This document shows positions 8,481 to 61,869 of a stretch of DNA of 64,000 bases, one piece after another. The stretch lies in NCBI RefSeq assembly GCF_003918875.1, contig NW_025767106.1, forward strand, positions 682,001 to 746,000, written 5' to 3'. Under the pieces are notes generated by a model, which did not search any database, was not told the origin of the DNA, and saw only the letters and a list, made by a program, of their open reading frames with translations. The position numbers and the translations under genes were made by a program. Every line of letters starts with the position of its first letter. Position 1 is the first letter of the stretch. Source of the stretch: Haliotis rubra. Lineage: Eukaryota.

Positions 8481-8699
8481 ATGTGATAAATATGTAACCA
8501 CTATTCAGTTAAACAAAGTATTGGAAGTAGGACACTAATTTGGTGCAGGAACAAACGTATCCAAGGTAAGAGTGACTACCCCTGACACACCTGTCGTCGA
8601 GGAATGCATATAGAGATGCATTGCCCTGTCGTTCTGTGATGAATTGGACATCCGGGATCAGAGCCTGTGTGCCAAAGACATCAGTAAGAGGAAATCTGA

Positions 8700-9230
8700 A
8701 CGGACAACCCAGATAACCTTTGAATTAATCTTCCTCAACCTTCCATTTCCCCGTTCCCCGTAATACTGGGCTTGACCCCTTAGTGACATAATATATGTAT
8801 TTGTGTCGAGTTGAGAAGCGGATAAGAGGTGAAAATGATTAATGAACATATCATCGTCGACCTTGAGGACCATCTGCGTGTNNNNNNNNNNNNNNNNNNN
8901 NNNNNNNNNNNNNNNNNNNNNNNNNNNNNNNNNNNNNNNNNNNNNNNNNNNNNNNNNNNNNNNNNNNNNNNNNNNNNNNNNNNNNNNNNNNNNNNNNNNN
9001 NNNNNNNNNNNNNNNNNNNNNNNNNNNNNNNNNNNNNNNTCTATTACGGACTGGCCTGGGACCGACTCATTTGTCCGGAATGTAAAACAGTCCGGATCAG
9101 ACAACCTTTGTCCGTTACCGTGTTCACTGCCACGATGAGTTACCTCCCTTTGTTAAGGACAACCAACAACTTGAATCGTTCTTTTGTTTTTTATTTATAC
9201 TCAATATATTATTTATACTTTCATTGAAAA
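8700..9230 (-). pseudogene. Beta-1,3-galactosyltransferase-like (GT31) relic, interrupted by an assembly gap
   Basis: VLKVDDDMFIN resembles the GT31 DxD motif (K.DDD.F.N). A shifted frame gives SPVLRGTGKWKV, resembling P.R...KW.V, followed by a stop. Confidence 0.45.
8882..9039. other. Assembly gap (N run)
   Basis: 158 N. Confidence 1.
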
Positions 9231-26952: not shown

Positions 26953-29900
26953 TTAAATCTCCAAAGTGCTGACTTTCTCTGTCTTCTTTTGACTGACATC
27001 TTCAACAGCTCTGCCAAGTTCGTAGTCTTTTCCCAAGGTCTGTACTGTGGTGTCCGCCAGTGGGGTATTATTTGTCTCGGGCAATAATACTGTTAATAAT
27101 GTGCAAAGTGCCATAGTGGATCCAACAATAACAAACGGAGGCAATAAATCCTCTCCTCCCTGAAAAGTTGATCAAAAGTAAACATTTCATTAGATTAACA
27201 ATACCAGTTGCTGTCTCAGTAACCATCAAAAGAAATAATAGGATAGTTTGATCGACTCTTTCACAATGTTAGATTGGCTTCGTCTTTTGGGGGTTCAACC
27301 GAAATCAAATTCTGACATTAAGTACCTTCATAACATAGTACAGTTTACAATAGAAAAATCGAATCTGTGAAAAGGATCTTCTCCTTGAACTGGACACCCA
27401 CTATAATGTACTCAATGTATTACTTTACTGTGCTGTTTCCTTTGCTGTCCTCAGACGTCTCCCTATTGGGACACAAACACTCAGTCCTCTCATTTTTACA
27501 AGTTAGTAGCGTTTCTTGAAGCAAACACACACCCCAACACTTACCATGGCAAAAGCATAAGGAGACACGATACTCCCTACACGGGCAGCAGTGTTTGCAG
27601 CACCATAACCTAGATTCCTGGAAGAAGGATGAAAGCAAATTACAAATCCGATTTCCAACTAGGTGCAAATGTCGGACCTATTATTACGTAAATTAAACTG
27701 GTATGGAACAGTACAGTACAGGGCACGAGGAGCACCATGGGTCACAGATGCATTGACGAGTCCACCTGTTACCCGTGCAATGGTTCTATAATAATGTACG
27801 ATCCCTATATTTGCCTAGATTTGTATTATTAATCTGTCAGAAACATAGCCATGCTCATGGCCATTGGTTTCACCCAAGCAACATTACACTTCATAATATG
27901 AAGCTTTCAAGCTGTTAGAGAATACATCATGCTGCTCCTTGGTACTAGTACCTGATAACTGTCGGGTATGTTTCACTTGTGGAAATCTGAAAGGAGTTCC
28001 AGGCTGTCGCTACTCCAAGCCTACAGATCAGAGTCATGGTTGTTGTTGCTGGTCCACGGATGCTGTCACTGGAAGCTGAAATGAGCACACATGGTACCTC
28101 AAAGTTCGAGCTTATAGCATTCATGTTGTTAATGTGTTCCCAAATAGCACCATCAACCTTCCATTTCAAGACAGAATGAGACTAGACTCTAAAGTTCTAT
28201 GTCTATCACAGAATATGTTTGTAACATATTCAGTTATTTGTTATGCCGACATCATTGCATATCAAAACGACTAATACTATTAATACTCTCCAGAGTACGA
28301 CTAATACTACTAATTTGGACAATCATTGACACGTATAAACCAGAAGAAAATACATAATCGGTCACGAAATTAATGTCCTTTGCCAACTGTTTTACTAATG
28401 CGCTCACGTGAATTAAGATACCGTTCAACTATAGAATGCGTACCGACTCTCGATATAATAGCCACTCCAAATGCCCCTATAGTAGCTACTGTAAAAAAAC
28501 GAGAACGTTGTCCATCTTCTGCCGATTCTGAAACAGTGGGAGCTTTCATTTACTGTCAACGTTTTAAAGAAGAAGTTTCAGAAAGTACATTTATATTTGG
28601 TTTGTTCAACTTTGCATTGGAAATATTCCAAAGAATAACATGTATTAACTCTTTAATACTTTACATGGAATATTGTGTGTTTCCTGCTTTTGTGTGAACA
28701 TTTTTGTTGTTGAAAAATATTAAATCCTGTCAACTCCAAAAGTATTAACATTTCAGAACAGTCTTAATTAGCTTTTTTGCCATACATGTAAACTAACATT
28801 TGTTTGTGCATTTACTGTATACCACATAGCAAACAAACCTGCTACTTAGGAAGAACACCATCACTTGTCCAGGTATTGATATGACAGAAACAAGGAACAT
28901 GTTGAGGTAAAGGTTCCCCATCAGGTTTCCCACGCCGAATGTAATTCCATAAAACGCAAACGACATGCACATCCTGTGGGGAACAATGACAATGAAAAAA
29001 TGCACTTTGGTTGTAATTATGTTCGAGTTAAGGGAAAGAACGTCTCTGAATGTCAACTCACCAGATCACCTGAATAACCAGGGATTTCCAGCAAATATTC
29101 CAGTGACGATAAATGTCAAGGTAGTTGTATTTGTGATCCGATTCCTGCCCTTTCTTTTCCACTTCTGATAGTTTCTTCAGGAGAATGGCAGTGTTGGCTG
29201 GCTTTTCTCTGTTGTTGTACCGAGCCATCTGATCTACCACCTTCTCTGCCTCCTCCAGCTTACCATGAACTGCAAGCCACCGCAAACTTTCTGGTGCCAC
29301 ACTATAGAAGGTTAACATTAGTGCCCAAACAATTCATGTACATATCATGTTGATGAAGAACGATCAATAAGAAACGAGAGAAGGCAGGTTACTGTTTTTA
29401 CTGAACAACATGATTTATTTTTGACAATGTTGATAATATTTGTGGGTTCTATAACACTTTAGAATTATGTTGCTGATCACACTTTGTGTTTACATATATA
29501 TGAACGGAAGTTACTCACAACCAACAAGCGAAGAAAGGTATATGTAAAGCTGCTAGTATGATATGTTGATCTGACCAGTCCGGACGCAGCCAACACGACA
29601 TTGCAAACAGGGCCGATCCAACTTGCCAGGTCGGAAATGCAGATGTTATCTGGCGCCAACTCCTTCCTATGAACTCCATGGCATAGGGATAACTTACCAC
29701 TAAGTTTGAACCAACCATTGCTCCAATAAGAAACCTGTAAAATGTAGATACCTGTTAGAAGTTATCCCATGCAGCTTTGTTTAAATCCATATGTTCATAG
29801 CTGCAAACCACAACCACTAACCAAACATGTTTTATAAACGTGTATGTTTTCGGACAATTATGCAAATATATTGTATCATTATATATGAACGTATTTGTTT

Positions 29901-34033: not shown

Positions 34034-34740
34034 AGTGAGTGAGTGAGTGAATGAGTTAATATTTAACGTCACATCGGCAATAGTTCATCCATATCGTGAC
34101 GAGAACAAGTTAATCTATATCAATATTAAAATCAATAAATTTAGAACATAAAAACCTGTCATCGAATGAAAGTAAAAAAACTAGTGCATCAGAGATATAA
34201 ATTTAAACATAGTACGCTGTCATAAAATTAAATCAATATAGACAGTACAAAATAAAAACGGGCTATAGATCACCAACAACTGAAGGTAGATCACCATACT
34301 AGGGCCCATGGGGACTTACAGTACTTTGGCTACCTGCATGGACCCTAGCTGGAATTACACCATCCCTTCAGCTGCTGGCGATTATGCTGAGTTTTAGCCG
34401 TTATTAAAAACTACAAATATACTACGATTAAAAGTTTGGTAGAGCTAAATTGACTTTGATGTTTTGGGACTTACGTATCCTCTCAGGGGGACAATAATAT
34501 TACGATACTTTAATCCCCTTTGAGGATACAGCCACTAACAATCGCAGGCGCTAATTCATACTACCGTATTTAAAATAACATTCATTTCTTTACGAAACAT
34601 ATTATTCCACATTTATGTAATAATTCTATTTCCTTTAAAAATTCAATTTTTAAATGATAATTAACATTGTAAAAAAATATCCTAAACTGTTTGGACATTG
34701 AAATATTTATCCCTTGTGATGGAAAAATCAGTTGTAAAAG
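34034..34740 (-). mobile_element. 5'-truncated I/Nimb-like LINE 3' end
   Basis: (CACT)n tail, conserved 3'-UTR blocks and ORF2 C-terminus-like DFSITRDKYF...EFLKEIELL. Related fragments at 14507-14772, 23820-23990, 41146-41326, 43605-43865, 52220-52700, 59468-59730 and 63955-64000. Confidence 0.75.
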
Positions 34741-36468: not shown

Positions 36469-39400
36469 TTAAATCTCCAAGGTGCTGACTTTCGCTGTCT
36501 TCTCTTGACTGACATCTTCAACAGCTCTGCCAAGCTCGAAGTCTTTTCCCAAGGTCTTTACTGTGGTGTCCGCAAGTGGGATATTATTTGTCTCGGGCAA
36601 TAATACTGTTAATAATGTACAAAGCACCATAGTGGATCCAACAATAACAAACGGAGGCAATAAATCCTCTCCTCCCTGAAAAGTTGATCGAATGTTAACA
36701 TATCATTAGATAAACAATACCAGTCGCTGTCTCACACAACCACCAAAAGAAGTATGAGTATATTGGGTAGTTTGATCGACTCTTTCACAACATTAGATTG
36801 GATTCGTATTTGGGTGTTCATACGAAATATAATTTTAACATTAAGTATCCCACAAAATACTTCGAATCTGTAGATATGATATATTTCTTACACTGGACAC
36901 CCATAGATATTTACGCAGATTATTTACTTCACTGACTGCTTAGACTTTAACAGTTGTAGGGGTGCTTAAGCCATCTGACGTTTCCCTTTTGGGACACAAA
37001 CATTTAGTCCTCTCCCTCTTACAATTTCGTTGTGTTTCATGCAGCAAACACACTCCCCAACACTTACCATGGCAAATGCATAAGGAGACACGATACTCCC
37101 TACACGGGCAGCAGTGTTTGCAGCGCCATAACCCAGGTTCCTGGAAGAAGGATGAAAGGTAATCACAAATCCGCAAGAGCAAATGTTGGTCTATTGTTAT
37201 GTAAATTACATTGGCATGACTTAATAAAGTAGAGATGACGAAGGACAACATGAGTCAGATATACAGTGACGTGCACACCTGTTTTCCGTGCAATGGTTCT
37301 GTCATCATGGTACGATCCCATGGTACGATCCCTGCCCAGATTATGATTACTGATCTGTCCAAAACAGACCCGTGTTCATGACCATTGGTTTCACCCAGAC
37401 ATCATTACACTTCATTACACAAAGCTATCAAGCTGTTAGAGAATAATATCCTTGTCATTCGAGCTTATCTCACTGACCCTGTGCTACTAGTACCTGATAA
37501 CTGTCGGGTATGTTTCACTTGTGGTCATCGTAAAGGAGTTCCAGGCTGTCGCTACTCCAAACCTACAGATCAGAGTCATAGTTGTTGTTGCTGGTCCACG
37601 GATGCTGTCACTGGAAGCTGAAATGAGCACACATGGTACCTCAAAGTTCGAGCTTATAGTATTCATGTTGTTAATGTGTTCCCAAATAGCACCATCAACT
37701 TTCGACTTCAAGAAAGGTTGAGACGAAGCTCTGGCAGTGTCCTCCCTTAGTAAACGTTTCTGATCATTACGCATTTAAGTCGTCAAAAGAGTACGAAATG
37801 GCAAGACACTGAACATTCAATCAAAATACACATACATAATTAGCAAATACCTTCATTACAGGAGTATACAAGGAAAGCGTTGTTATTACAATATACGCAT
37901 GACCATGTGTTAACGATACGACCCTTTCTCCTCGGTTGACTGCGTTTTAATTACTAATATAATTAATTTTGAGATTCCATGACATGTATAGAACCAAGGA
38001 AATTATAAAATATATATGATGAAACGAATATCTTTTGCCAATCTATTACCAATGCACTCATGCAAATTAAGATACCGTTGAACTATAGAATGCGTACCGA
38101 CTCTCGATATAACAGCCACTCCAAATGCCCCTATTGTAGCTACAGTGAAAAACGAGAACGTTGTCCATCTTCTGCCGATTCTGAAAGTGTAAGAACTTCA
38201 TTCACTATATATTTTATGACTATTTTAAAGAAATAGAGATATCAGTATGTACATTTATATTTCGTTTGTTCAACGTTGCACTTGATAATATTCCAAATAA
38301 ACCTGGGATACATTCATGGCTAACCGCTCAATATCACTGTAGTCTTTGCTGATGTATTGTACATGACAGGCTTATTACTTCTTTGTTCTTGACATGAAAT
38401 AGTTTGTGATTTCCGATTTTGTGTAAAGATTTTAGGATTCTGAAACAATAATATTAAATGATGAAAACTCCAAAAGTATTAACCTTTTGCAACATTGACA
38501 TTTGACGTATTTGACACAAATGTATTGAACGTATATAGTAAATGTACAAACAAACCTGCTACTTAGGAAGAACACCATCACCTGTCCAGGTAATGATATG
38601 ACAGAAACAAGGAATATGTTGAGGTAAAGGTTCCCCATCAGGTTTCCCACGCCGAATGTAATTCCATAAAACGCGAAGGACATGCACATCCTGTGGGGAA
38701 CAATGGAAATAAACAAACATGCATTTGGGTTGTAATTATGTTCGAGTTAAGGAAAAGAACGTCTCTGAATGTCAACTCACCAGATCACCTGAATAACCAG
38801 GGATTTCCAGCAAATATTCCAGTGACGATAGATGTCAAGATAGTTATATTTGTGATCCGATTCCTGCCCTTTCTTTTCCACTTCTGATAGTTTCTTCAGG
38901 AGAATGGCAGTGTTGGCTGGCTTCTCTCTGTTGTTGTACCGAGCCATCTGATCTACCACCTTCTCTGCATCCTCCAGCTTACCATGAACTGCAAGCCACC
39001 GCAAACTTTCTGGTGCAACACTATGGCAGGTTAAGGGTAGTGTCAGACAATTCATATATAGATCATGTTGATGAAGAACGATCAATAAGAAACGACATAT
39101 GGTAACTTACATGTATTCATCAATTCAAGTAGCTTAGTGCTTTTACTGAACAATATAAGTTACCTTTGACAACGTTGATAATATTGCAGGATGTTTACAT
39201 GTCTATGAACGGAAATAACTCACAACCAACAAGCGAAGAAAGGGATATGTAAAGCTGCTAGTATGATATGTTGATCTGACCAGTCCGGACGTAGCCAACA
39301 CGACATTGCAAACAGGGCCGATCCAATTTGCCAGGTCGGACATGCAGATGTTACCTGGCGCCAACTCCTTCCTATGAACTCCATGGCATAGGGATAACTC

Positions 39401-40963
39401 ACCACTAAGTTTGAACCAACCATTGCTCCAATAAGAAACCTGTAAAATATACATGATACTCGATAGTTTTGTGCGATACAGTTTTATTAGTAGCCACACA
39501 AAAAGAAAAACGAAGCAAATGTGTGTTACATATTTGTATATTTTCGTTTAATGATGTAAAATTGTTAACGCAATTTTTATAGTCTACCTTAGCACAATAA
39601 ACATCTGCCATGATACTGAAAATGCAGCCACCAAGTTGAATCCTCCGTGTAACAACAGAGCGATGTAAAAGGTCTTCTTTCTGCCAATAACATCAGCAGA
39701 CTGTCCGCTTAAGAGGGCTCCTACCAACACACCTCCCATTTGTACAGACGTAATGAACAGCCTGATTCCTGCTCTGTCGCAGACAAAGTCCCACTGAAAA
39801 GAAATTTGCACAAAAAGTTTACAATATTCAGATAACTTATAATACCTTCTCATTTCTGTGTGGAATAACGTAATCTCGGTTCGGACACCTTAGCTCGTCA
39901 TTGATAAATGGTAACTGTTATTGCCTTCGCTGTCACTTTCAATATAGGGGATAACGCTGGGACATGGCTCCGTCAGAAGTGCAGCTACCGTGAACAAGAC
40001 ATGATACCAAATGTCATCTAAAACAATTTCAACGCTCTTTACACAACTGCATCTTCACGACATCTTCTTGGCGGCCATCTTTGTTTACTTTAAGAAAATT
40101 CTTCGTGCTTAAGTAACCCATGGAGGATTCTTAAGTTAAGAAAAAATCAAGCACTAAGAGGTTTGATGAATATTAAAAATCTTAGTTTTAGATAGGTTGC
40201 TATGGAAACTAAGAATTCTTACCAGACTTAAGAATTCTTAAGGCTTAAGATTATTCTAAGAAATTTAGTGAATCTGGCCCCTGTATCTATATCCCACGTA
40301 GTACTACGCGAAAAGGGAGCGCACTACAAACAAACAACTTTCATAAATCGTGCTAGTAATAAATAATGACACTCAAATGGTGTGTCGGTGCGCAATGCTG
40401 TCTTGTGAATGAGTTGATATTAATTTCTGGCTAACTGTTTTGCCACTTTAATTGTAAAAGAAATGAAGGATCAATGGGTTATCTGTAACCGTGTTTTGAA
40501 AGACACGTGGAACAATATGTCTGTCTTTTTTGAGAAAATATACGTCATCCAGTGGATGCTCCTTCATTTTAGTTTGTTACAAAAAGCAATGACGCAGCGA
40601 CCATGCGCGATTGTGAATTGTTATGAGATGGAGATGGAGGCGCGTTGTGTATCCTACAAATACCTCACTTGATATATTTTGGGAAATTCTCACCTCATTT
40701 ACAACTGTGTTTTTCTCCGTGCTGTACACAAAAGAACACGAAGTGCCATTGTCACCAACTGAGCACTGCTTCAATCCTGTGTAATTACTGGCGCCGCTGG
40801 TCATTTCGTTCACACACCACCACAGTTGCGGTGTCACCCCAGCGAAAGACATCATCAACATTCCCCAGGACGTGACCAGTCTTGGTCCCATAAACAGAAA
40901 TAGTATCAGGAACTGGAACTTGGACATTCCTCCCACTCCATCGATGATCTCATCAGAATACAT
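36469..40963 (-). CDS. SLC22-family organic ion transporter, paralogue C (intact, 9 coding exons, 517 aa)
   Basis: Exons 40963-40694, 39793-39588, 39439-39224, 39020-38781, 38690-38556, 38180-38098, 37617-37494, 37140-37068, 36675-36469. All introns GT-AG, phases join to 1554 nt. SLC22/MFS motifs: WDFVCDR, ADVIGRKK (motif A), MEFIGRSWR, APESLRWL, IGRRW, SETYPTVIR, AARVGSIVSP, LLPET. Confidence 0.92.
40040..40284. mobile_element. PIF/Harbinger-like MITE fragment
   Basis: Terminus TAGTGAATCTGGCCCCTG; internal CTTAAG-rich inverted motifs. Left end unclear. Confidence 0.45.
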
Positions 40964-45056: not shown

Positions 45057-46540
45057 GATGTGTTGTGCATATATGTAGTCGTTCACCTATTTCGATCACT
45101 CAATGAGTCAACAAACATCTATCGCATACACGTAAGATTTTTAGAGGAAAAAATTACTTACCTCGGAACAGCAAGAGTGGCTGAATTGTTTTTCTGCAGA
45201 ACATGTATGCATGAACTGAAGTTAATACACCTTATGACGCCCGTATTTGCAGAGAGTTTTGGGTATGTAAATGTGTAAAGTGAATGCGAACAACAAGTAC
45301 TTGGAAACATGTTTGCATGGCATGCTTGAATGACACATACGTACATCAGACGACACGAGGGCATGTGAGGAGACTATGTTCTGCTGGCCTCTTTGTTTAC
45401 AATGTATCAAGTTTAAAGGTGCATGTGAACGGTGTACGTTTGTGTCAAGGTCGTGTATTTTATCCCACCTGGAATCCCTGACAATATATCTCAAACATGA
45501 TCAACAACGGCAGACAATATGACAAATGTGACAATAATATGTATCGGTACCACAGGAAGGCGTCACACCCCGAGATCCATCAGTTGACGTATCTCCGCTT
45601 CGAATGATCTGAATTATTCGGATTTGAAATATGCAGTGAAGTCAAATTGAAATGAAAATAACATATACCCTAATCGATGTATATAAACTGGGGTATCTTA
45701 GACTTCAATAACGGAGACCATTACTTATAATTTTAATTTTACATTGAGCATCCTAGTGAACGGGTGCAGGAAATTCATGAACGATTGTGCTGTATAGATT
45801 TTGTAAAGTTTGACCGACTGTTCGTGTCTCAATAAATGGTATGAAGTCAGAATGAATAAATAGTTGTTAGTACATACATACACGTTGTCATCGTTTGCCT
45901 AATCGTTTTATGGGCCCCACTACAGGTTGCTACATCTTTCAGTGTATAATGTATGTCGAATGAATTATGATTTGAGAATTCATAACTAAAATCTAAGCAT
46001 CTGTAACGTGTTGTAAATACTGGGGACAACCAGTGATTACTCTTTATTACTCTCAAACACTTTTCGACTATGAAATGTGGCGGCGTCATTGTAGAATCGA
46101 GCTATAGTTTCCGCGCATACACGGCTAGCTTACATGCAGATTAACACCTGAGAACTGCAAACTTAGAAAAGAAGCTGAACGTTCGTTTCCAATTCAGTAC
46201 ACGCACAAGATGTTGATATGGAACAAATACCAAGACCCATAAATAGGAATCAAAACGATACGATCTCGTATGTATTTCTATAATTACAATAAACGATCGA
46301 TTGCATTTGCACCTGCGTTTTAGTACATGGACTCTTGAATCAAAAGAGCAGAACTGATGGAATGTGTGATGTAAGGATGTGTGTAATGCATTTTAAGCGA
46401 GAGTATACCTGGAATCAAAAGAGTCCATCAGATTTCAGGTTATTATGAGCAATGATGATGATACCACGTGGCCTCGTTTATCCTGACCAAGCAGTTTTAC
46501 TTGTGTAAGGGAAGCTAGCTAATGCCTTTGATTCACATTA

Positions 46541-46760
46541 ACCCGTGAAGATCCGGGTTCAAATTGATCTCCAGTAATTCATGCTTGCCGTAAGAGGCGA
46601 CTAACGGGGTCGGGTGATCAGGTTCGCTGACATGGTTGACGCGTCATCTTATCCTAGTTGCATGGATTGTTGCTCATGCTGTTGATCACTGGATTGTCTG
46701 GCCCAGACTCAATTATTTAAAGACCGCCACCATATAGCTGGAATATTGCGGTGTAAATAT
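46541..46760 (+). mobile_element. Family M element
   Basis: Near full-length copy just before the N gap. Confidence 0.82.
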
Positions 46761-46799
46761 CATTTGTATATCTACAGATCTAAGAGAAGACAAGGATGA

Positions 46800-46955
46800 N
46801 NNNNNNNNNNNNNNNNNNNNNNNNNNNNNNNNNNNNNNNNNNNNNNNNNNNNNNNNNNNNNNNNNNNNNNNNNNNNNNNNNNNNNNNNNNNNNNNNNNNN
46901 NNNNNNNNNNNNNNNNNNNNNNNNNNNNNNNNNNNNNNNNNNNNNNNNNNNNNNN
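46800..46955. other. Assembly gap (N run)
   Basis: 156 N. Confidence 1.
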
Positions 46956-47664
46956 CTCTCCTAAGGACTGATTCATGGTTAAGCTTTTAGTGTCAACTTG
47001 CGCAGCAACACGTAACAGAAGGCAATACACGCAAATTTGACGTCTTTACTGACAAAGTCGCTTTCTGTTGTTAGTTGGCGAAAGTGTAACCCATAGATAA
47101 GCCGACCAGTGTCTACGGTAACGGACAGTAAGTTGTCCAATCCGGACAAATGAGTCGGTCCCATGCCAGTCCATAATAGACAGATTCCATTGTATATTGG
47201 TTAAACCTGCTGGAATCAGTGGGAGTTAATTATCTCTGCAGTCTCTAATGAATGAACGACCTCGGTGTGGCTAGATCAGGGAAAATGGGAGCTGTGGAAC
47301 TATCCTAAATAAATATTATCCGATGGACACTAAGAAATAGACGAACACGCCTGAAAAGCTATTTAGCATTCAAGACGAACATCATGTGGGCCGAAAATGA
47401 AAATTCCACTTTCAAATTAAACAAATACTTGTTCAACGCAGGTCCTTGACTTCAAACAATACAAAAATACTTGATCTTAAACTGACAGTTATTCTCTATT
47501 TATTCTGAGTTATTCTCAGATTACTAGAAAAGGCGGGAGGTGTTACTTAGATATATTGCCAAGCGAAACCAACCCCACACAGCATCAGAGCGAACCATTA
47601 AGGTTCATGTACCGGCGATGGCTACACCCGGTTGTGATAAACTATTTGAGCAAGACTGACTAAC

Positions 47665-48549: not shown

Positions 48550-51500
48550 TCAAATCTCTAATGAACTGTCTTTAGCTTTCTTTCCTTCAACATCTCCATC
48601 AATCGTGTAGCGTCTTCCCGACGTCCTGTCTGTGGTGTCAGCCAGTACGGTATTATTCGTCTCAGGCAACAATAATGTTAATAGTGTACAGACTACCATA
48701 GTGGATCCGACAATAACGAATGGGGGCAAAAGGTCTTCACCTCCCTGAAAAGTTACAGAACCTAAGATCAGATGTGAACATTTCATTCGATAATGTTTTT
48801 AATGTGAAGAATTATGCATAGTCAATGAATTTGTTAATATTTCATTTGGGTTGATTTGACATTTAACACCAACAATATTATACTTCTGACAAAGCATCCA
48901 GCTGCAATATCGATATTGAGAAACTATGTGATGTAAAGTGAGTGAGTGTGTGAGTGAGGTTAGTTTTACGCTGCACTCAGCAATATTCCAGCTATATGGT
49001 GGCGGTCTGTAAATAATCAAGTCTGGACCAGACAATCCAGTGATCAACAGCATAAGCATCGATCTGCGCAATTGGGAACCGATGATATGTGTCAACCAAG
49101 TCAACGAGCCTGATCCCGCAAGTCGCCTCTTACGACAAGCATGGGTTACTGAAGGCCAATTCTAACCCAGACCGTCACGGGTTATGTGATGTAGAGACTT
49201 GAATAACGTAAAAAATACACGTTAATATAATAAATGTTGTGTCATCGATAACATAGAGGTTGTAAATATGATATACTACTAACAATTGTTATCGACGGGA
49301 AAATAATACACTCTTTCAGTTCTTAGTATCTCTTAGTATACTCACTCAATATTTAGATCATAGTACCACTCACCATGGCAAATGCATAAGGAGACACGAT
49401 ACTCCCTACACGGGCAGCAGTGTTTGCAGCACCATAACCCAGATTCCTGGAAGAAGAATAAACCGCAGTTTCAAGTGAGAGCAACAGTCGGACGTGTTTG
49501 CAATAATACTGGCACGTGACAGGGTGGAATTGGAGTTACAGGGGCCATGGGGCCCGATCCACTAAACACTCGTAAACCTATGATAAACATAGAGTTAGGA
49601 CAGGTTGTAACGTTATGAACCCTTTGTGAAATGGGACTCACATACCCAAGAAGCCATAATTCGCAGTGAAGGATGCACCTCTTACACATGTAGTTGTTCT
49701 CTTGGCATGGCTCAAGTCCCATATCTGTCCATCATCACGTGTTTAACCCGACCACCATTACTGTCAAAAACCCTGGTTACTCAACAGTTCGCTCTCGCTA
49801 AGGTATATCTAGTACCTGATAACTGTCGGGTATGTTTCACTCGTAGTCATCTGAAAGGAGTTCCAGGCTGTCGCTACTCCAAGCCTACAGATCAGAGCCA
49901 TTGTCGTTGTTGCTGGTCCACGGATGCTGTCACTGGAAACTGGCAGTGAACCACCATTTGTAGAAAATTCATGTAGCCGGCATGATCCCAGATCTGAACG
50001 TTTACTTTGGATTTTCCAGAGGACGTATGGCACAACTGGAAAAATCTGCCTTTGTCCACTCTAAGTAAGTGTCAGTAACCAGCAACGCTAATGTTGCATA
50101 CTCGTCATATGTGTCAGGATAATCAAAACTGATAAAGAATTGGCTTTAAGCAATCTGTTCAAAACACAATAAACACGCATGCACCACCAATACCTTCGTT
50201 CTGACGATAAAACCAGAAAAACATTAATTGTAGCAGTCGCGAAATTTCTGCAATTTTCTGTGATTTTATATTTAGTAAATGTAACTCGCGTTCACTGACA
50301 GAAACCAAACTACAAACGAATACATGCATAGATATTTGTAAAATACTCTTGAATTATGGAATGCTCACCGACTCTTGATACAATAACCACTCCAAATGCA
50401 CCAACAGTAGCTACAGTGAAAAACAAGAATGTTGTCCATCGCCTTCCGATTCTGAAAGATTAAGAACTTCACTGAAAACATCAATACTGTTTGTTGCTTA
50501 AAGCCGCCTTCAGCAATATTCCTGATTCGTGAGTGCGTGTTGTTTCAGAGGAATCATATAAACATTTATTTGAAATGAATAATAGTATATGCTAGAAACT
50601 ATTAACGTACAACACCACTGTTGATTTACGTTTTTGAATATGCAAACTAGCATTTGTTTTTGGTATGGTATGGTATGCTGTGAATGTACAAACAAACCTG
50701 CTACTTAGGAAGAACACCATGACTGTTCCAGGTACAGCTATGACAGAAACCAGGAACATGTTGAGGTAAAGGTTCCCCATCAGGTTTCCCACGCCGAATG
50801 TAATTCCATAAAACGAAAACGACATGCACATCCTGTGGGGAACAATGGAAATAAACAAACATGCATTTGGGTTGTAATTATGTCCGAGTTAAGGGAAAGA
50901 ACGTCTCTGAATGACAACTCACCAGATCACCTGAATAACCAGGGATTTCCAGCATATATTCCAGTGACGATAGATGTCAAGATAGTTGTATTTGTGATCA
51001 GATTCTTTTCCCCTTTTCTCTTCTTCTGATAGTTTCTTCAGGAGAATGGCAGTATTGGCTGGCTTCTCTCTTTTGTTGTACTGAGCCATCTGATCTACCA
51101 CCTTCTCTGCCTCTTCCAGCTTACCATGAACTGCAAGCCACCGCAAACTTTCTGGTGCAACACTATGGAAGGTTAAAGGGGGTGTCAAATAATTCATATA
51201 TGGATTATGTTTATTATGAAAGATCAAATCCATCAGAAATGAAACGAGATAAATTACATGCATTGATCAATCCTGGAAGGTAACCGTTTCTACAGAACGA
51301 TAACATTTATTTTCAACGGTATATGTATCAACAGATAAAACAAGCGAAGAATTAAACCAAGTCATAAATAGATGATTATTCATCAATACACCAATAGTTA
51401 TGACAAAACTTACAATAACAATATATGTATTGATCAACGATGATAGCCATCGTTATTACCTCATTTAATATGGACATAATTTTGTCAATAAACGTCATTG

Positions 51501-53200
51501 TTACCCTGGGAGGTTACATGTAAAGCAATGCGAATCACTCACAACCAACAGGCCAAGAAAGGGATATGTAAAGCTGCTAGTATGATATGTAGATCTGACC
51601 AGTCCGGACGCAGCCAACACGACATTGCAAACAGAGCCGATCCAACTTGCCAGAACGGAACAACAGATGTTATCTGGCGCCAACTCTTTCCTATGAACTC
51701 CATTGTGTATGGATAGCTCACCACTAAGTTTGAACCAACCATTGCTCCAATCAGAAATCTGTAAAATATACATATGCTTTATGCGATACCATTTTGTTTA
51801 GTGGCATATGTTAGTGGTAAATCGAACCAAATGTGTGTTAGATACTTGTATTTTTTCGTTTAACGGTGTAAAACGATTAATGTATTTGTTTATAGTCTAC
51901 CTTAGCACAATAAACATCTGCCATGATACTGAAAATGCAGCCACCAAGTTGAATCCTCCGTGTAACAGCAGAGCGATGTAAAAGGTCTTCTTTCTGCCAA
52001 TAACATCAGCAGACTGGCCGCTTATGATGGCTCCTAGCAAAACACCTCCCATTTGTACTGATGTGATGAACAACCTGATTCCTGCCCTGTCGCAGACAAA
52101 GTCCCACTGAAACGTAATTTTGAATGTCACTATGAAGCAAACATGGTTCAGTAGGACTTCTTCCTACATCAAACACCACCTTCAATTAAGATGTTACATT
52201 CTATTTCAAACTATTAAAATGTAAAGTCACTTCGGCAGTATTTCAGACTAAGAAAGTTGTAAATTTATAAAAGAATAAAAACAAAGTTTGCTAATATACT
52301 TCCCTGTCTGCAAAGGACAGTAAAACAACTAGATTGTTCAATATAAGTTTAAAACTATTAACTAAATCTAATATTTTGACTATAAAGGACAATATACAAT
52401 ATAAAAACAGGCTATAGATTGCCAACAACTGAAGGTAGCTCACCATACTATGGACCATAGGGGCTTAGAGTACATTTGCTTCTTGCATGGACTTTAGCTG
52501 GATTTACACCATCCCTTCAGCCGTTAGCAATTTAGACAAATGTAGCCATACATTTAAAAGAGACATAGTGTGCGATTAAAAAGGGGAAAGTTTTAATTTA
52601 CTTTTAATGTTATGGGACTTACGTACCCTCTCAGGAGGGACAATACTTTTACAGTACTTTAAGCCCCTTTGAGGATACAGCCACTAACAATCTAAGTTTA
52701 CTTATTTAAACTTCCAATCATAAAATATTTATCTATTTTATATGAAACAGACGTACCATACTATTTGTATGAAATGTGATTGAATAAATTCAACATTTGG
52801 CCTTTACATTTACTGGTTTCGAAGTTTGTTAATCGACAAAGGATACCGGAAATAGATTTATTCATTGTTACAAAATACTTCACAGATATTCAGATAAGAT
52901 GCAAGGTTCATTTGATAACAAGTCCGTCTGTCTCGAAATAGTGTAGAAAATAGTGGGATAAGGACTTGATATGAGACGCAAATCTTTGGTGTATACTTTC
53001 GAAACAAATCTAAGACAGTGCTCACATAATTTCCTTACCTCAGTTACAACAGTATTTTTCTCCGTGCTGTACACAAAAGAACACGAAGTGCTATTGTCAC
53101 CAACTGAGCACTGCTTCAATCCTGTGTAATTACTGGCGCCGCTGGTCATTTCGTTCACACACCACCACAGTTGCGGTGTCACCCCAGCGAAAGTCATCAT
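48550..53200 (-). CDS. SLC22-family transporter, paralogue D (first coding exon 5'-truncated; other exons intact)
   Basis: Exons 53200-53039 (starts MMTFAGV, about 36 N-terminal codons missing), 52106-51901, 51758-51543, 51162-50923, 50832-50698, 50451-50369, 49939-49816, 49446-49374, 48744-48550. Canonical splice sites; no stops or frameshifts seen. Confidence 0.78.
48938..49182 (-). mobile_element. Family M element in last intron of D
   Basis: TSD TATGTGATGTA; full length. Confidence 0.87.
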
Positions 53201-53387
53201 ACTTTGATTGCATTTTTCTTGCTTTTAACGCCGCACTCATCAATATATTGCTCAATAATGGAGGGACTGACATCATGAGCGTTGATCTTTGCCTTTCTGA
53301 TATTACGTATGTGCATATTGATGGATTTTGACAGAATAAGCTACGAAACGTATATTTAGCTGTTTCCAAGTATAGCGTAATTCTAAC

Positions 53388-56300
53388 TTGTTGTTCAAGA
53401 AGAACACGGCCATTTCGCTGGGCAAAGAGATCACCGATACGAGGAACATGTTGACATATAGGTTCCCAGTCAAGCGCCCAACGCCGAAGGAGATGCCATA
53501 GTATACGAAGGCCACTAGTAACCTGCAGCAAACAAGGCACATTGATCAAAGGACACAAACAGCAAAATGAAAGACATTAAATATTTGGTTATTTGAAATC
53601 ATCCATCTTTCAGATTATGTTAGGCTGTTGAATGTTTTTGTTTGGTGTGCAATAACATTTGACTAATCCGAAAATATCATGTTGTTTAAGATGACCCGCA
53701 TCTATATTATACCTACATGACCTGTCAATAATCAAACCTAGAACATTGACAAAGTCTAGTGTCTGATGTCATGAGCAAAGATACACACCAACGATGACGT
53801 TGGTCACTGAACCGGATCATCTGATCAAGTAGGTAAGTTCTTACAACATGTTATAAGGATCGAAATCCGAAGACCATATACGAGTCATGCAGATGCGATT
53901 ATTATCAGAAATATTGCTGAGTTCGTTTTTTTAATCTGGAAAAACCAAGACATTTTGTTTGAAAATTTCTTTGCGGTGTCGTATCAGTTATATTAATGAT
54001 AACCCCTTCCTACATAGTTTTGCTTGAATAAAGCTGCACATATTGAATTATATAGAATGATAAATACATCTCACCATATAACTTGGTGAACAATAGATTT
54101 CCTGAACATACTCCAACCACGATAGATATCCAAATAGCTGTATTTACGGTCGGAGTCGCCGCCTCTCCTTTCTTCATCTGACAGTTTCTTCAGGAGGATT
54201 GCGGTGTTTGCTGGCTTCTCTTTCTTGTTGTACCGAGCCATCTGATCTACCACCTTCTCTGCTTCCTCCAGCTTACCATGAACTGCGAGCCACCGTAAGC
54301 TTTCTGGCACAATCCTAAAGATGTACAGTGCAGCTACTGAATGTTGTATTTCATACCCTGACAGTTGGTTGCATCGTTAAATTCATTGCTGAGTGTAATG
54401 CTTCAATAGACATATAAAATGTCATTTACATTTCACAGAGAGATTCAACAACAGGTAAAATATTCATCCATTACAATCTGACTGAAAAAAGGATGTTCTC
54501 ACCACTGATATTCCAATATGCTCATCATAAATACCGCAGAACATAAACTAAAGCTGCAATCTAATAAGTTAAACATCGTGATGTCTGCACAAGGCGTATA
54601 TACACATATGGGTTGTTTACTCCCGCAAACAAATATGTATTTATGAGAACATTAAAGAGTAGCATCAGAAGAGGTCAAATATTGAAATGTTACAGAAAAG
54701 CAGGACATATATTATGTATAGCGCCAGTACTGAGTATATGTGTGCGAAATTATATTCCAGTTTGGGCATAACTGACTGTGTAGCATGTTAACTTGGCTGA
54801 CGGGTTAACTCTTTTGAAAATTCTCTATTCGAAACTCTTAAACAAATAGGGGTGTCATGATTGAAGGAACTAAATGTATGAATCCCTGTCCAGCTATATA
54901 CATACCAATGGCAGCGTAATGGTCATACACAAGACTTAGAATACTGTATTACGTAGTTGGTAACTCACATAATCGTTTCATCATATATACATGTAGCTTC
55001 TAAATACCACTCACATTTGCACCAGATACAATATACAGTATATATTACTAACAGATAACCAAAGAAAAAGGGAACTTGAATGGCTGCCAGTATGATGTGA
55101 AGATCGGACCAGTTTGGACGTAACCAACAAGTGAGAGAAAGCAGAGCAGATCCACGGGCCAGAAGGGAATAGCGGCGATGATTGGACGCCAGCGGGTCCC
55201 TATGAACTCCATTGTGTAGGTAAAGCTCACCACCAGGAATGAACCAACCATCAATCCAATACAAAATCTGAAAAAATATTCTCCATCAGATGGGGACACC
55301 GAAAACGAGTGAATAATAGTTGAACCTGCTTTCAGTCATATTCGATTGCTTCTTTTCCGAATGGGAAAATGATGAATTCCATGCATTATGGACATGCTGA
55401 GGTTTAAAACTTAAACCAATAGGCTGTTCATGGACCCTGATGGGATATAATCAGTATGTTATATATAATAAAATAATAATATAATTAACTGAATAAGAAC
55501 GAGTGGGCATTGCAATGGCAGGCAATGCAGGCACCTTTAGTGTTAACTTTAGAATGATTTCATACATGCCTTAACGCAATAAACATCTGCCATGATACTG
55601 AAAATGCTGCAGTCAAGTTGAACCCTGCGTGGAGGAACAAAGATATGTAGTAGGTCTTCTTTCTCCCAATGACATCAGCAGATTGACCACTAATGAACGC
55701 CCCAATCAGCACACCCGTCATCTGAACTGCTGTTATCAATGGCTTGATCCCTTCCATATCACATAACAGGTTCCACTGAGAACAAAAATGTGTATCTGTA
55801 TCATGTGATGTAATAATTGACATTTTAACGGACGGGAACTGATCAAACTACTTTAGTGTTTTCAATATGTAGTTTTAAACATCTAATGGTTAATGTAAGG
55901 CTGATCAGGGGAATGAGTGTGTACACACTCAAAAACAGGATCCACTTGCTGAGTGTTCTAATCCCAGATACACTTTTGTGACAATATTTCTGTTAGAGGC
56001 ACAAACACACTTCTGGTTTTAATACACTTTGTATCCAATGCGTAACGTACTTTTAAAAATAAAAATCCCCTAAATTTGGTTGCTGGTGGTGATGGCATTG
56101 TAACAGTGTTAAAAGAGAAAAATAGATGTATGTGTTGCTTGAATATTTCATAATTTGAGATGTTAATGGCTAGAATCGAAATGTATGAGGTCGTGCTAAT
56201 GTTTTTCAGTCCATTGTATATTTATCAACTGATGTCTCCTGATGACATTAAACTTCAACTCACTCGTAAGCGGATCCTTTTGTAATTATTTCATGTAAGT

Positions 56301-59300
56301 AATCGATGTAACTTGGGATATTAGGGGCCATATTTGTATATGTTATGGCAGTTGATGTCTATACGGATACCTGAAGCACCATATCCTACACTGATATCTA
56401 GAGAACGATAACGAATACCAAAGAACCATTTGAAAATGACCGTAAGCACCATCCACTAATGATACCTGGGCGATCATCATATAATGATGTATGCTCAAGG
56501 AACAAACTTCACCACCCCATATTTTTCAAACTATCAATATGTTACAATTAGCCACAGCGGAGGAACCTTAATCAAACCTCACTGTCACGTAATATCCGGA
56601 TACAATGATGCTAAAAAATAATTACATGACAACTCACAACTAAGAAAGAACCAAAACCGTAGTTTATATAAAGATGCCTACATGGCGAAGAAATGCATCT
56701 AGCTATGGTCGTCTGACGTGAACAAATGTTTACATATACAAGATTCTGGCAAACAATCCTCATGAAATTACCTAAGTATCAATAATCGAGCACAATATCA
56801 TTATCAGGTGAAACCTCCGCCAACATTCTTGTGTATTGCAATGCGTTATGATAATGTAACGAAAGACCCATAATGTCCCAAACCTGCTCCATGGAAATGA
56901 GGTTTGGAGGCGACGCGCATTTGATCGTAGGACGTGCATATCTAAAATCAATGTGTGGTGCTCTTGACGCGTCAAAATAGTCATACAATACAATAATTAT
57001 ATCATGACTAGAAATAGCTATATGGGGCTTAACATCAGTAGGTGTTGCGGTACGTTTTTTTCCATATGTATCCTGTGTAACAAGCGCACCATCTAATCAT
57101 TTTGAGAGATCTTCTTCTGATACTTGGGGATAGTTTTATCAAACTATAATGCTAGCTACACCTTGTGGACAATCTTCTGCTGATGCTTGGGGATAGTTGT
57201 AAAACTATAATGTTAGATACCTTGAGGTCACTGTTAACATGATTCGTGGCCAACCATACTACCACGATATACACAAGAAGCTGCACCCCAGTATTACACG
57301 ATCCTATAATGCCAAACTAAGCACTATCTTGCAATGACATTTGACACCCTGTAATGATATATACCTGCAGTTCCATCCTGTAATGCAATACACTTGGTTC
57401 ACAATGATATATACCACAGGGCCTAGATTTTCGATGCTCTCTTAGCGCTAAGGTAGTCGTATGTTAATGTATGGCACTTACAACTATCTTAGCGATAAGA
57501 ATGTCTAGACCCAGGAATACTACTCTTTGATAATACGTCACTGTCCGAATGTCGGCACATATAAAACAACTCGGACCATTTCGACACAGCTGAGCACCTT
57601 GATATTCATTATGGGAATTTGTTTTCTGTGACATTTATTCACTAAATGTCTTATCGTATACATTTTCGTCATACTATTTGCATACTTGATCTAACATGTA
57701 GGTAGGTTTATGCATGTAATGTTTCAGTGCCCTTGATATCATTTGTAGATATTAGATATTGTTTTAATGATTAGAAGTTTAAATTAGTAACTTAGATTGC
57801 TAGTGGCTGTACCCTCAAGGGAGGTTAAAGAGTTGTAAAATATTGTCCCAGTGAGAGGGTACGTAAGTCCCTAAACTTTCAAAGTATATTTCAAACTTAC
57901 CAGGATTTTTAGCATAGAAGTTCTGTGATTTTTAATTATGGCTAAATTTGACTACAATCGCCATCGGCTAAAGGGATGATGTAAAAAATCCAGCTATGGT
58001 CCATGTAGGTAGCAAAAGTCCTGGAAGTCCCCTTGGTCCCTAGTATGGTGATCAACCTTCAGTTGCTCTTGATCTATAGCCCATTTTTATATTGTACTGT
58101 TGCCTCTAGCGATGTATATTTATGATAGCGTACTAGTTTTAAATTTAAAGCTGTGATAATCTAGTATTTTTACTGTCCTTCGATGACGTTTTTTTACATT
58201 CTAACTTTATTGATTTTAATATTGATATAAATTAAATTGGTCTCTTCACGATATAGCTGCAATATTGCCGATGTGACGCTTAATCTTAACTCACTCACTC
58301 ACTATGATACTATGTAGATTACATTGTTTTATATTATTTTACAGGACCACCATCGTATAAAGTTACCGTAAACATATTATTTTCCCGGATATCTGGAGTG
58401 AGTGAGTGAGTTATTATTTAACATCACATCGGCAATATTGCAGCCATATCGTGACGAGAACATATTTGATTTTGAAGTGGAATATATTTATATTATAAAA
58501 ACCTGTGGACGAAGGACAGTAAAACAACTAGAATATCACAATTAGAATTAAAACTAGCGTGGAAAGTTTAAAACTAATAGCACTATTGGGGCAATACAAT
58601 ATAAATACAGGCAAGATCTCGCCAACAACAGAAGGTAGATCACCATACTAGGGACCATGGGTGTTTAGAGTACCTTTGCTACCTGCATGGACCCTAGCTG
58701 GATTTACAACATCTCTTCAGCCGTTGGCGATTGTAGGAGAATTTAGCCGGCAGTTAAAAGAACAAAAATATTACGATTAAAATGTGGTAAATTTACATCT
58801 TACTTGAAAGTTTTGGGACTTACGTACCCCGGATATCTGGAGCAACACCAAGATGATGCTTGCATTATAGGATAACAACACCTTGGGAACCATCACTTAA
58901 TGATACAAGCCTGAAACACCATCCTGCAATAGTAAATGCCGAAAACATCTTAGCACAGACCCATTATATTCCTGGGAAAGAAGGTAACTCCATATTGCTG
59001 AATGTGCAATTCGTAATAAATACTTCTGAGTTAACAGTCCCAATCATGCCAACGTATATGCAAAATACTTAAACACATCAAGGCTGTTTCTTTAATGAAT
59101 TTAATGGTAACTTACTTCACTGATGGCAGTGTTCTTCTCTTGGCTGTACACAAAAGTACATGTGCTTTCGTTGCCTGTTGCCGGACACGCCTTCAGGCCA
59201 GTGTAGTTGCTGACGTCGACGTTATCAGCAGCATCGCTGACGATGTCCGTGCACCACCATTTTTCAGGGTCCACTCCCACGAACGACATCATCAACATTC

Positions 59301-59400
59301 CCCATGCTATCAATCCTTTAGGAACCATGACCAGCAGCATGATGGTGATCTGGAACCGTGACATTCCCCCCACACCGTCTATGATCTCATCAGAGTACAT
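53388..59400 (-). CDS. SLC22-family transporter, divergent paralogue E (first 5 coding exons only; 1-nt deletion; may splice into D)
   Basis: Exons 59400-59116; 55775-55570 (GC donor); 55267-55053 (215 vs 216 nt, missing G near 55152); 54314-54075; 53522-53388. Motifs WNLLCD, ADVIGRKK, VPESLRWL. No E-specific downstream exons before D begins. Confidence 0.68.
56740..57060 (-). mobile_element. Highly decayed Tc1 transposase fragment
   Basis: RAPH...ASPPNLISMEQVWDIMG resembles ARPH...SPDLNPIEQVWD. Confidence 0.45.
57418..57513. mobile_element. ~95-bp palindromic MITE
   Basis: GGGCCTAGA...TCTAGACCC ends; internal CTTAGCGCTAAGGTAGTCGTA / TACAACTATCTTAGCGATAAG inverted repeat. Confidence 0.55.
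57790..58282 (+). mobile_element. I/Nimb-like LINE 3'-UTR fragment
   Basis: Same 3'-UTR blocks in + orientation, ending AACTCACTCACTCACT. Confidence 0.75.
58399..58827 (-). mobile_element. I/Nimb-like LINE 3'-UTR fragment with 15-bp TSD
   Basis: TSD CCCGGATATCTGGAG at 58384-58398 and 58828-58842. Confidence 0.8.
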
Positions 59401-61869
59401 CCTTGTGTCTTCTCTTAGATCTGGAGATATACAAACATGTATCATTTTGTTTCAGCAACAAGATAATAAGTGAGTGAGTGAGTTTAACGTCATCCCGGCA
59501 ATATTTCAGCCATATAGTGACGGGAAAGGTTTTGCATTCACAATAAATACAAGCCGTTAAATAGCCAGCCATAGAAGGACTGAAAAAATAACTAGAGTAT
59601 CACAGACGGTGTTTAAACCTAGCATGTGAATCTAAAACTAGTTTAGTTACGAAGACGATATACTATAAAAAAAGGCTAAACATCGGCAACAACTGAAGGT
59701 GGATCACCATATTAGGGACATGGGTACTTACATGAGATTTGTAATAAAGTAAAAACTTAATATAATGTTTCCATTAAGAATACAATTTACACAAAACTAT
59801 GCTGTTTGTCATTCGACTACACACAAATGTATATAGACCACAATTTGTGCCCAGCCAAGCTAACGAAACAGGGCAAAGGGACATCAGAGGAAATCATGCA
59901 TAATGTAAAACATGACCTAATGACCCCACTTGTAATTTATGCTAATTGTAATAGGTAAAACATGGCAATGGTCACATTTATGTACTTGTGAGAGGACAAC
60001 ATGTAATAGCCGCGACCATAAATGTTCCCCCTGGGGCCGGATGATGTATATAATCGTGTCATTCTTCTCCCAACTGTCATTCTGAAGAACACTGAAAACA
60101 CATGACCGTTGGCAAGCGAATTCAATCCGGTTCCCCTGAAAACATGTCACATTAGAAAATGTAGAAGATTGCATAATGCCTGTCAATGTGAAGTACCTTA
60201 CCCAATTCGACCTCATTTACAAAGGTAAGGACCTATCTGCCACATTTAATATTGCGTAAAATATATTTATGTTTATGACGTACCTTCGAAGCAGTTGGAA
60301 TGTGCCGAGTTTCAGAGGTATGGCATCTGTAGGCAATACAAGCTTCAGCTCAAGACAGTGTGCTCACGTTGTGTGTTCGTAACGGCCTCCACGTGTATTG
60401 CAGGGCGGCCTGTATGTAAATATGTAAAGTGACTGCGAGCTTCAAGTACTTGGTTTAGTGATTGAGTTAATTTGCATTAGAATGTGTCTGAAGTATGTCA
60501 GACCAACGTGACATGAGCCAAGATAAGGAGCCCATGTTCTTGTGGCAGCCTTGTTTACGATGTATCAAGTCGCACATATAAGGAATGTATTTGTGGTACG
60601 CTCGCTGGCTTTATCTGACCTGTATCCAGGGCCCTTAGACAAATCCGTCTATATGTATTATGCTGAGTCCCATTGCAATTCGTGTTTGAGCAAATGTTTG
60701 AGGATCCTGTACAGCGGATATGCGTCACACTTATTACAAACAGTATATTTATGTAGCTTTCTTTCTTTAGTATTTTCACACATTGCTATAAACGGAAGCC
60801 ATACCTTATACATGTACAAAATGTAAGCTACATGTATGTTCGGATTATGAACGATAACGTGAAACCGTCACCATAACAAATGGGTGATTTGTTTTAAACT
60901 CTTTGCATGTGTTGTCTTTGTTACGTTGTTTCAGTGAACCAAGTGACACCCATTTGAACTAAACATTTGAATTTCATACATATATCTGAAATATTTGTCA
61001 AACATACCTTGTTCCCGATCACACGACCTTATGCTTTGAGCATGTGAAATCATCTATTTCTAATGAAATAATATTCATGATGAAGAACAATTGTCACTTA
61101 CATGATACTATACACGTTACAGCAGCAGAACCACGAGTACATGACATTTGTGACAAAGTGAAAGACCTTGCATTTACTTCGGATGTAACTGTATCGAATA
61201 GAATGAACTTTGAGCATCAATAAGAAGAAACTTATTTATGCATTAGTGAATTTCTGATGAAGCGAAGAGAAATATTTATATGTCCCCAAATGAATTCGTT
61301 TTAAAGAACCAATATAGTTTAACAGAAGCTCTAACTGTCGTAACAATCAGCGGGCATTAGCTTAGTGATTCGACTGAGCTTCTCATGTTTGAAGCCACTG
61401 GACCGTTACACAGCTTACCAGATATAACCACACCACTGTGTAACATTAATGTTTTATACGCCATATAAATGGAATAGACTGCGATATAATACAGTACTCC
61501 CAAATTCACATTTATCCTTTGTTAAATGATCCTATATTGTACCATATGTCTTTATGTATATGGGCCTACGGTCTTTCATACAATAAATATTAGAAATAGA
61601 ATAAAAAATCCCATTATATTCATGGCTTGCTTGCCAGTCACTGTGATGATCACCGCATGACCATCGACGATACACTTTGTCGTGTAATAACTATGCCATG
61701 TGGATTTAGCAAGATATATCTGATGTTTAAACAGCGGTACACGTTGTCGAACGCACGGTTTCTCCACGTGGGGTCAACAAGAGTTCATCTCGAGGTCGCG
61801 CATACCTACAATAACGTATAGTCAAAGTAAAGTATTCACTCACACATAAACACGTGTCAACGTGCGTTA

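Follow-up and report, generated by a model that had tools for sequence, protein, structure and literature searches.

Is a locus at which the 5' half of one transporter gene runs directly into the next gene of the same tandem array a new gene with alternative multi-exon cassettes, or is it a dead fusion? The question is raised by a 64,000-nt stretch of the genome of the blacklip abalone, Haliotis rubra (hereinafter the window; RefSeq scaffold C2216:682001-746000 from the 1.38-Gb, 2855-record draft assembly; PMC6774278), whose minus strand carries five copies (A to E) of an SLC22/OCT-like gene, as delineated by tblastn with exon open reading frames (ORFs). Copies E and D meet at a short joint, and the initial annotation saw in this an intergenic deletion that had created one transcription unit with alternative, divergent cassettes of coding exons 2-5, keeping two dead halves or a mis-assembly as fall-backs. 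The evidence presented here makes these fall-backs the most likely, viz., a very recent dead fusion or an assembly fault rather than a new alternatively spliced gene, and hence ordinary gene-family turnover or an assembly problem. We assign a probability of about 0.5 to a real, very young, dead E-D fusion in H. rubra.

Architecture of the E-D locus

Exon bounds were set by context and GT-AG boundaries, and searches were run exon by exon; joined models served solely for local phase arithmetic, for local alignment and for the tree, with the frameshift in E bridged by N or X only. In window coordinates, and read 5' to 3' on the minus strand, the locus comprises:

60411-60570, minus strand: upstream block, non-coding and conserved, about 1 kb 5' of E coding exon 1
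59400-53388, minus strand: copy E, SLC22-like
59400-59116, minus strand: E1, coding exon 1, 95 codons, ending in phase 0
55775-55570, minus strand: E2, 206 nt, with a GC donor (AAG/GCATGT)
55267-55053, minus strand: E3, 215 nt instead of 216
54314-54075, minus strand: E4, encoding the central cytoplasmic loop
53522-53388, minus strand: E5, encoding TM7-TM8 (TM, transmembrane helix), ending in phase 2, the last E exon present
53201-53387, minus strand: joint of 187 bp, from the E5 donor to D1'
53200-48550, minus strand: copy D, SLC22-like
53200-53039, minus strand: D1', exon 1 remnant, codons 37-90, TM1 missing
52106-51901, minus strand: D2
51758-51543, minus strand: D3
51162-50923, minus strand: D4
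50832-50698, minus strand: D5
50451-50369, minus strand: D6
49939-49816, minus strand: D7
49446-49374, minus strand: D8
48744-48550, minus strand: D9

As initially annotated, E retains an upstream block and coding exons 1-5; E-type exons 6-9 are absent from the window, from the 10 kb upstream and from the whole 1.38-Gb assembly, in which a search with residues 361-520 of the E orthologue yielded paralogues (50-72%) as its top hits. The upstream block, which has counterparts upstream of C (45263-45412) and of A (25467-25617; 68-71% matches) and is, at the sensitivity of the search, single-copy genome-wide and no genome-wide repeat, is probably a promoter or an exon of the 5' untranslated region. 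Copies A, B, C and E have an acceptor in common, which lies roughly 20-24 nt before the ATG (~24 nt in E). E3 has a 1-bp deletion at ~55152 (GGG to GG) relative to copies A-D and to the orthologous proteins, and the resulting frameshift leads to a stop at codon 236.

Similarity between D and copies A, B and C sets in abruptly at 53200, i.e., at codon 37 of exon 1, and D has neither an upstream block nor the shared 5' acceptor. Its exon 1 remnant is 96% identical to copy C and opens with an in-frame ATG ATG, the breakpoint lying 2 nt after an AG; D2 to D9 (48550-52106) are all open, with GT-AG introns. The placement of D 187 bp beyond E, midway through exon 1 and devoid of an upstream block, was hence correctly described, whereas the statement that it has no acceptor needs amending, given the AG at 53203-53202 directly before D1', which is a very poor acceptor. 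Three features had been overlooked: this weak AG (53203/53202), the use of GC as the E2 donor, and the model of the locus that RefSeq already contains.

Within the joint, 85 bp are unique sequence, presumably the start of E intron 5. The joint also carries the fragment of family M, a SINE-like (short interspersed element) family, that had been noticed near the junction; it is real, and is a decayed 5' fragment on the plus strand (53203 to ~53300) with its 5' end at the breakpoint. This 100-bp piece resembles other M copies at only ~70%, aligns to them with a gap of 37 nt, and is so decayed that an assembler would not be misled by it. Neither a second copy of the junction nor a second haplotig or a displaced 3' half of E was found in the assembly, and no tandem repeats were found across the E-D locus. 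E1-5 and D1'-9 form a single contiguous locus, placed under the E promoter region.

The affiliation of these copies with the SLC22 family of the MFS superfamily is established by profile and solved-chain matches: the Pfam Sugar_tr (PF00083) and MFS_1 (PF07690) profiles match the exons and P0216, P0147 and P0072, E exon 2 alone recovers the solved OCTN2 chain 9pdq (E = 7.5e-12), and the E orthologue aligns to the latter over residues 90-491 (E = 1.4e-54). Compared with the human SLC22 proteins with solved structures (OCTN2 9pdq, URAT1, OAT1, OCT1-3), the abalone copies have a shorter TM1-TM2 extracellular loop. No single gene at the E-D locus holds the complete 12-TM frame: E ends after TM8 and has a frameshifted exon 3, and D lacks TM1. 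A crude hydropathy count of the helices was too insensitive and was replaced by the OCTN2 alignment.

The donor of E2 (55568-55569) is GC, and is GT in all paralogues. A Logan ORF from another Haliotis species (P0217) ends in the same read-through peptide (..ALRHV), implying the same GC donor in an intact orthologue; E intron 2 is therefore probably a genuine GC-AG intron conserved in the E lineage, and we rejected the GC donor as a lesion on account of this identical peptide.

Ancestral state and origin of the joint

Copies E and D have separate orthologues in other abalones. With an X at the break, E is 94.2% identical in local alignment to the H. asinina protein XP_067661284.1 (520 aa) over 359 residues and 90.4% identical to XP_048244246.1 of H. 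rufescens (517 aa), its first exon alone being 88% identical to residues 1-96 of the former; D shares 92.5% of 477 aligned residues with XP_067660441.1 of H. asinina (517 aa). In a maximum-likelihood (ML) tree, E groups with XP_067661284.1 (support 99/97) and D with XP_067660441.1 (96/92). The E orthologue is, at the protein level, full length in H. rufescens and H. cracherodii too. An entry point to these Haliotis proteins was a large protein search with E1, which itself returned distant representatives only (best 41% identity).

The H. asinina and H. rufescens orthologues belong, like the E-D locus, to a nine-coding-exon SLC22/OCT-like family; they are separate and complete, whereas the H. 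rubra locus lacks the 3' half of E and the 5' end of D. On this protein-level evidence the E-D arrangement is not conserved, H. asinina having two separate full-length proteins of 520 and 517 aa. Separate complete orthologues imply that the ancestral state was two genes, and the fusion is thus the derived state in H. rubra.

From the gene and spacer coordinates of the other copies, we infer that ~8-11 kb was lost, made up of a ~2-3 kb gene portion and a 5.7-7.8 kb spacer. We propose that, very recently, a non-homologous event, either in the H. rubra lineage or only in the haplotype of the sequenced inbred animal, removed E exons 6-9, the E-D intergenic region, the upstream block of D and codons 1-36 of D exon 1, with the break falling beside the decayed SINE fragment.

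Hybrids that arise in tandem arrays by unequal crossing-over include Lepore delta-beta globin, CYP11B1/B2 and the red-green opsins. As at the E-D locus, neighbouring paralogues are fused in them by the loss of an interval, the 5' part of one being joined to the 3' part of the next. They are, however, in register and yield a gene of normal length, whereas the E-D fusion is out of register and has no homology, and a SINE fragment, at the joint: the joined points (E intron 5 and codon 37 of D exon 1) share no sequence, and the breakpoints do not occupy the homologous positions of an in-register, Lepore-type product of non-allelic homologous recombination (NAHR). Both NAHR and a collapse of paralogues were rejected as unlikely, the breakpoints being out of register (intron 5 against exon 1).

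Coding potential and splicing of the fused locus

Phase arithmetic upholds the frames that had been initially proposed. E1 followed by D2-9 gives a frameshift-free chimera of 518 aa, open as assembled, as does E1-2 followed by D3-9, which the initial annotation did not list (also 518 aa). E1-5 followed by D6-9 is full length (518 aa) only with the 55152 indel bridged, i.e., if that indel is an error, and the same applies to the longer frames of E1-5 with D3-9, D4-9 or D5-9 (715, 643 or 563 aa); as assembled, any product of E1-E5 stops at codon 236. Joined to D2-9, E1-5 meets a stop at codon 385, and bridging the indel does not remove it. D1'-D9 alone has an open frame of 477 aa (53200 to 48550) that starts with the breakpoint ATG ATG.

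Acceptors were scored with a local position weight matrix built from 28 true acceptors of the array, which are paralogous and hence not independent and which score -1.2 to 12.9 (mean 8.2). The acceptors of E3-E5 and D2-D5 score 4.7-12.6. Among the 76 AGs between E5 and D2, the D2 acceptor comes top (10.5) and the one at 53201 ranks 54; a splice from E5 to D2 is out of phase (phase 2 into phase 0). In the dead-fusion reading, a transcript from the E promoter would by default be spliced from E1 through E5 and then, phase 2 into phase 0, to D2. Read-through transcripts would carry premature stops, owing to the E3 frameshift (codon 236) and to the strongest acceptor after E5 being that of the out-of-phase D2, and would be degraded. 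We accordingly expect, from the frames and sites as assembled, that the locus makes no normal transporter.

The alternative on which the initial annotation centered is a functional chimera, i.e., one unit under the E promoter that yields 518-aa, 12-TM transporters with either the E or the D version of exons 2-5 (via E1 to D2, E1-2 to D3, or E5 to D6), such that a species-specific deletion would have given rise to a multi-exon choice in a single step. There are phase-compatible alternative exon sets with usable splice sites, as in mutually exclusive cassettes: two of the chimeric frames (E1+D2-9 and E1-2+D3-9) are open as assembled and a third (E1-5+D6-9) is so if the indel is an error, the regular 12-TM layout would be kept (as judged from the OCTN2 alignment and known topology), neither half shows relaxed constraint, and RefSeq models a single gene. 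Against this, the splicing would need to skip at least four well-defined exons (acceptors 4.7-12.6), H. asinina and H. rufescens, with both genes complete, do not have the arrangement, and E3 is frameshifted as assembled; moreover, we know of no mechanism for excluding a whole multi-exon cassette. We consider this reading very unlikely. Clusters of mutually exclusive exons that arose by tandem exon duplication, e.g., those of Dscam1, likewise place paralogous, phase-compatible exon sets in one potential transcription unit; in these, single exons alternate and the clusters are conserved and backed by transcripts, whereas the E-D sets are four-exon blocks and species-specific. The initial annotation is thus partly supported overall: the separate orthologues and the single RefSeq gene agree with a loss of sequence having made one contiguous locus, whereas the alternative cassettes are unsupported and improbable, given their lack of conservation in relatives, the out-of-phase default splice from E5 to D2 and the frameshift in E as assembled.

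RefSeq covers this very locus with XP_046581230.1 (827 aa, 'solute carrier family 22 member 15-like' [Haliotis rubra]), which treats E and D as one gene but corresponds to none of the isoforms initially proposed. It maps exactly to E1, E2 (with the GC donor), E3, a shortened E4 from 54282, E5, an exon at 53201-53039, and D2-D9. A real, internally duplicated 827-aa transporter made via acceptors at 54283 and 53202 would account for this exact map and for the two MFS/Sugar_tr stretches of the protein. However, both of these cryptic acceptors score below every true site (-4.5 for E4 at 54284/54283 and -8.2 for 53201, the latter being the site that ranks 54 of 76), 37 residues come from the wrong frame of E3 after the deletion, and a chain of 8 TMs, a displaced loop and 11 TMs would be topologically frustrated. 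E5 ends after TM8, in the cytoplasmic 8-9 loop (E orthologue aligned to OCTN2 9pdq); given the known SLC22 topology, a direct E5-D1' protein would place the extracellular loop of D inside the cell and invert TM2-12. That this protein exists is the least probable of the readings considered here. With its two special acceptors so far below the true sites, the model is probably an ORF-preserving construct and not a real product, and the 'SLC22 member 15-like' entry should be used with caution; the locus, in short, is already annotated in RefSeq, though probably wrongly.

Copy D could also act alone from a new start site in the joint or the SINE fragment, producing a 477-aa, 11-TM protein without TM1. 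In favour of this, its ORF runs uninterrupted between 53200 and 48550, the ATG ATG stands precisely at the breakpoint, and the D lineage has been under constraint, with a dN/dS (ratio of nonsynonymous to synonymous rates) of 0.27 against C and a short terminal branch. This constraint may, however, predate the break or stem from gene conversion with C and B, and the loss of TM1 would be expected to invert or misinsert the remaining helices of the MFS fold; we hold this outcome to be highly improbable. A word search of the protein collection with the D1' ORF gave no candidate, and in an exact look-up in the same collection ten exon or junction ORFs, control exons among them, were all absent; with even the controls missing, both blanks are uninformative.

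Age of the fusion, constraint and the quality of the assembly

Given a correct assembly, the locus bears the disabling lesions of a pseudogene, viz., the 3' truncation of E, the 5' truncation of D and the 1-bp deletion in E3. Relaxed constraint, the other mark of a pseudogene, was not observed, which is compatible only with a very young one. The lineage-specific residue changes number 6 in E, all of them conservative, compared with 8 in its intact H. asinina orthologue, and 9 in D compared with 18; in the ML tree, the terminal branch of E measures 0.016 and that of its orthologue 0.064, the corresponding lengths for D being 0.032 and 0.049. The dN/dS of 0.27 between D and C was measured over exons 2-9. 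As E has no close paralogue and does not change faster, the constraint on it was lifted either very recently or never. The lack of acceleration can be read in three ways: the deletion is young (perhaps polymorphic), the assembly is at fault, or function has been retained.

Several of these and other observations weigh against a dead fusion. An artefact or continued function would explain the absence of acceleration in E just as well, and D may have been homogenized by gene conversion with C and B, which would have kept its frame intact, since exon 1 evolves in concert within each species. The 1-bp indels of E3 and of exon 6 of copy B both lie in short homopolymers, and the assembly pipeline was error-prone, combining wtdbg 1.2.8 and DBG2OLC with two Racon rounds, a single Pilon round, QuickMerge and haplotig purging (Purge Haplotigs) on two pooled individuals (PMC6774278). 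A break immediately in front of an in-frame ATG ATG has an estimated chance of ~1-2%; its position leaves the 477-aa frame of D open and permits the in-frame join of the RefSeq model. Finally, a piece of E-type sequence lies inverted nearby:

46763-46799, plus strand: inverted E-type exon 1 start, 35/38 nt, acceptor region plus ATG, running into the N stretch 46800-46955

It is found 1.75 kb downstream of the D stop, directly after an M element (46533-46749), and its 28-nt core occurs twice in the 1.38-Gb genome. It is possibly a further trace of the rearrangement, in which case the event was no simple deletion, or else a sign that the assembly is disturbed here.

In the main rival reading, an assembly artefact, E and D would both be complete in the animal, and the ~10-kb gap and/or the E3 and B6 indels would come from the Nanopore meta-assembly, from limited polishing among tandem paralogues, or from the purging of haplotigs, with a rare or faulty one retained. 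The pipeline, the homopolymer indels, the lack of extra amino-acid changes in E and D relative to the intact orthologues, and the stray exon 1 start, whose differences at 3/38 positions resemble consensus noise, are all consistent with such an artefact. On the other hand, the joined points have no homology and, with exons ~75% identical and introns not at all, offer no substrate for collapse; the missing 3' half of E is nowhere else in the assembly; a same-orientation loss between direct neighbours resembles a true deletion; and the M fragment is too decayed to be misleading. The BUSCO completeness of 91.6% also speaks against rampant errors (PMC6774278). On balance, an artefact appears less probable than a real fusion, though far more probable than any functional product of the locus.

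A real, very young, dead fusion is the reading we prefer; E and D would then form a young fused pseudogene within a tandem array that evolves by birth and death, A being clearly dead and B frameshifted. A real junction would provide an instance of gene loss through fusion that can be dated, in a transporter array with rapid turnover and in a mollusc of commercial importance; an artefactual one would mark a part of the H. rubra reference that is both mis-assembled and mis-annotated. The locus would be of broader interest only in the improbable event of a functional chimera, in which alternative cassettes of several exons would have originated in one step. Our literature search on abalone SLC22 arrays found nothing.

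The remaining copies and repeats

The other three copies in the window are:

40963-36478, minus strand: copy C, SLC22-like
30752-26962, minus strand: copy B, SLC22-like
19119-10748, minus strand: copy A, SLC22-like

Copy C (36478-40963), with nine exons and GT-AG introns, has the only clean 517-aa frame in the array; its RefSeq model XP_046581229.1 is just 292 aa long, skipping the end of exon 3 and stopping via read-through of the exon 4 donor. In copy B, an extra base in a T-run (~28490) of exon 6 (28444-28527) causes a frameshift and, in the model used, a stop at codon 387; this base may be a polishing error. RefSeq XP_046581228.1 (516 aa) carries ~26 wrong-frame residues here and regains the frame through a shifted donor. 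Copy A is a clear pseudogene: exon 3 carries an insertion of 4 bp, exon 6 contains an in-frame TGA, exon 2 as aligned falls 10 nt short of its counterparts in B-D, no exon 7 can be detected and a 5-kb gap separates exons 5 and 6. Judging by these lesions in A and B, the SLC22 array is decaying.

In the part of exon 1 that encodes the extracellular loop, D (53039-53200) and C (40694-40855) are 96% identical, with a dS of 0.06 against 0.30 for exons 2-9, and the H. asinina paralogues have species-specific residues of their own in common in this part. This indicates concerted evolution or gene conversion of exon 1 of B, C and D within each species. Two further complete nine-exon paralogues lie outside the window: F, on another scaffold (G000:C2072:209600-216351; RefSeq XP_046574105/6), is E-like and 75% identical to E, and G (G000:C2216:618000-633929), 48 kb below the window, is about 50-70% identical.

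E intron 1 contains an inverted repeat pair (57763-58829) that matches the 3' region of a long interspersed element (LINE) at 34042-34562:

57776-58303, minus strand: LINE arm in E intron 1
58396-58829, plus strand: LINE arm in E intron 1, in opposite orientation to the former

A long array of ~60-95-nt repeats (many 85-94% matches) occupies 6500-8500, just before the N stretch 8882-9039. The two N stretches of the window were rejected as RNA-scaffolding gaps: the draft scaffolding added 29,200 bases over 292 joins (PMC6774278), i.e., 100 N per join, and the runs are 156 and 158 N long. Directly after the second of these, 9040-9088 is the reverse complement of 47132-47180 (90%), which lies close to the other N stretch.

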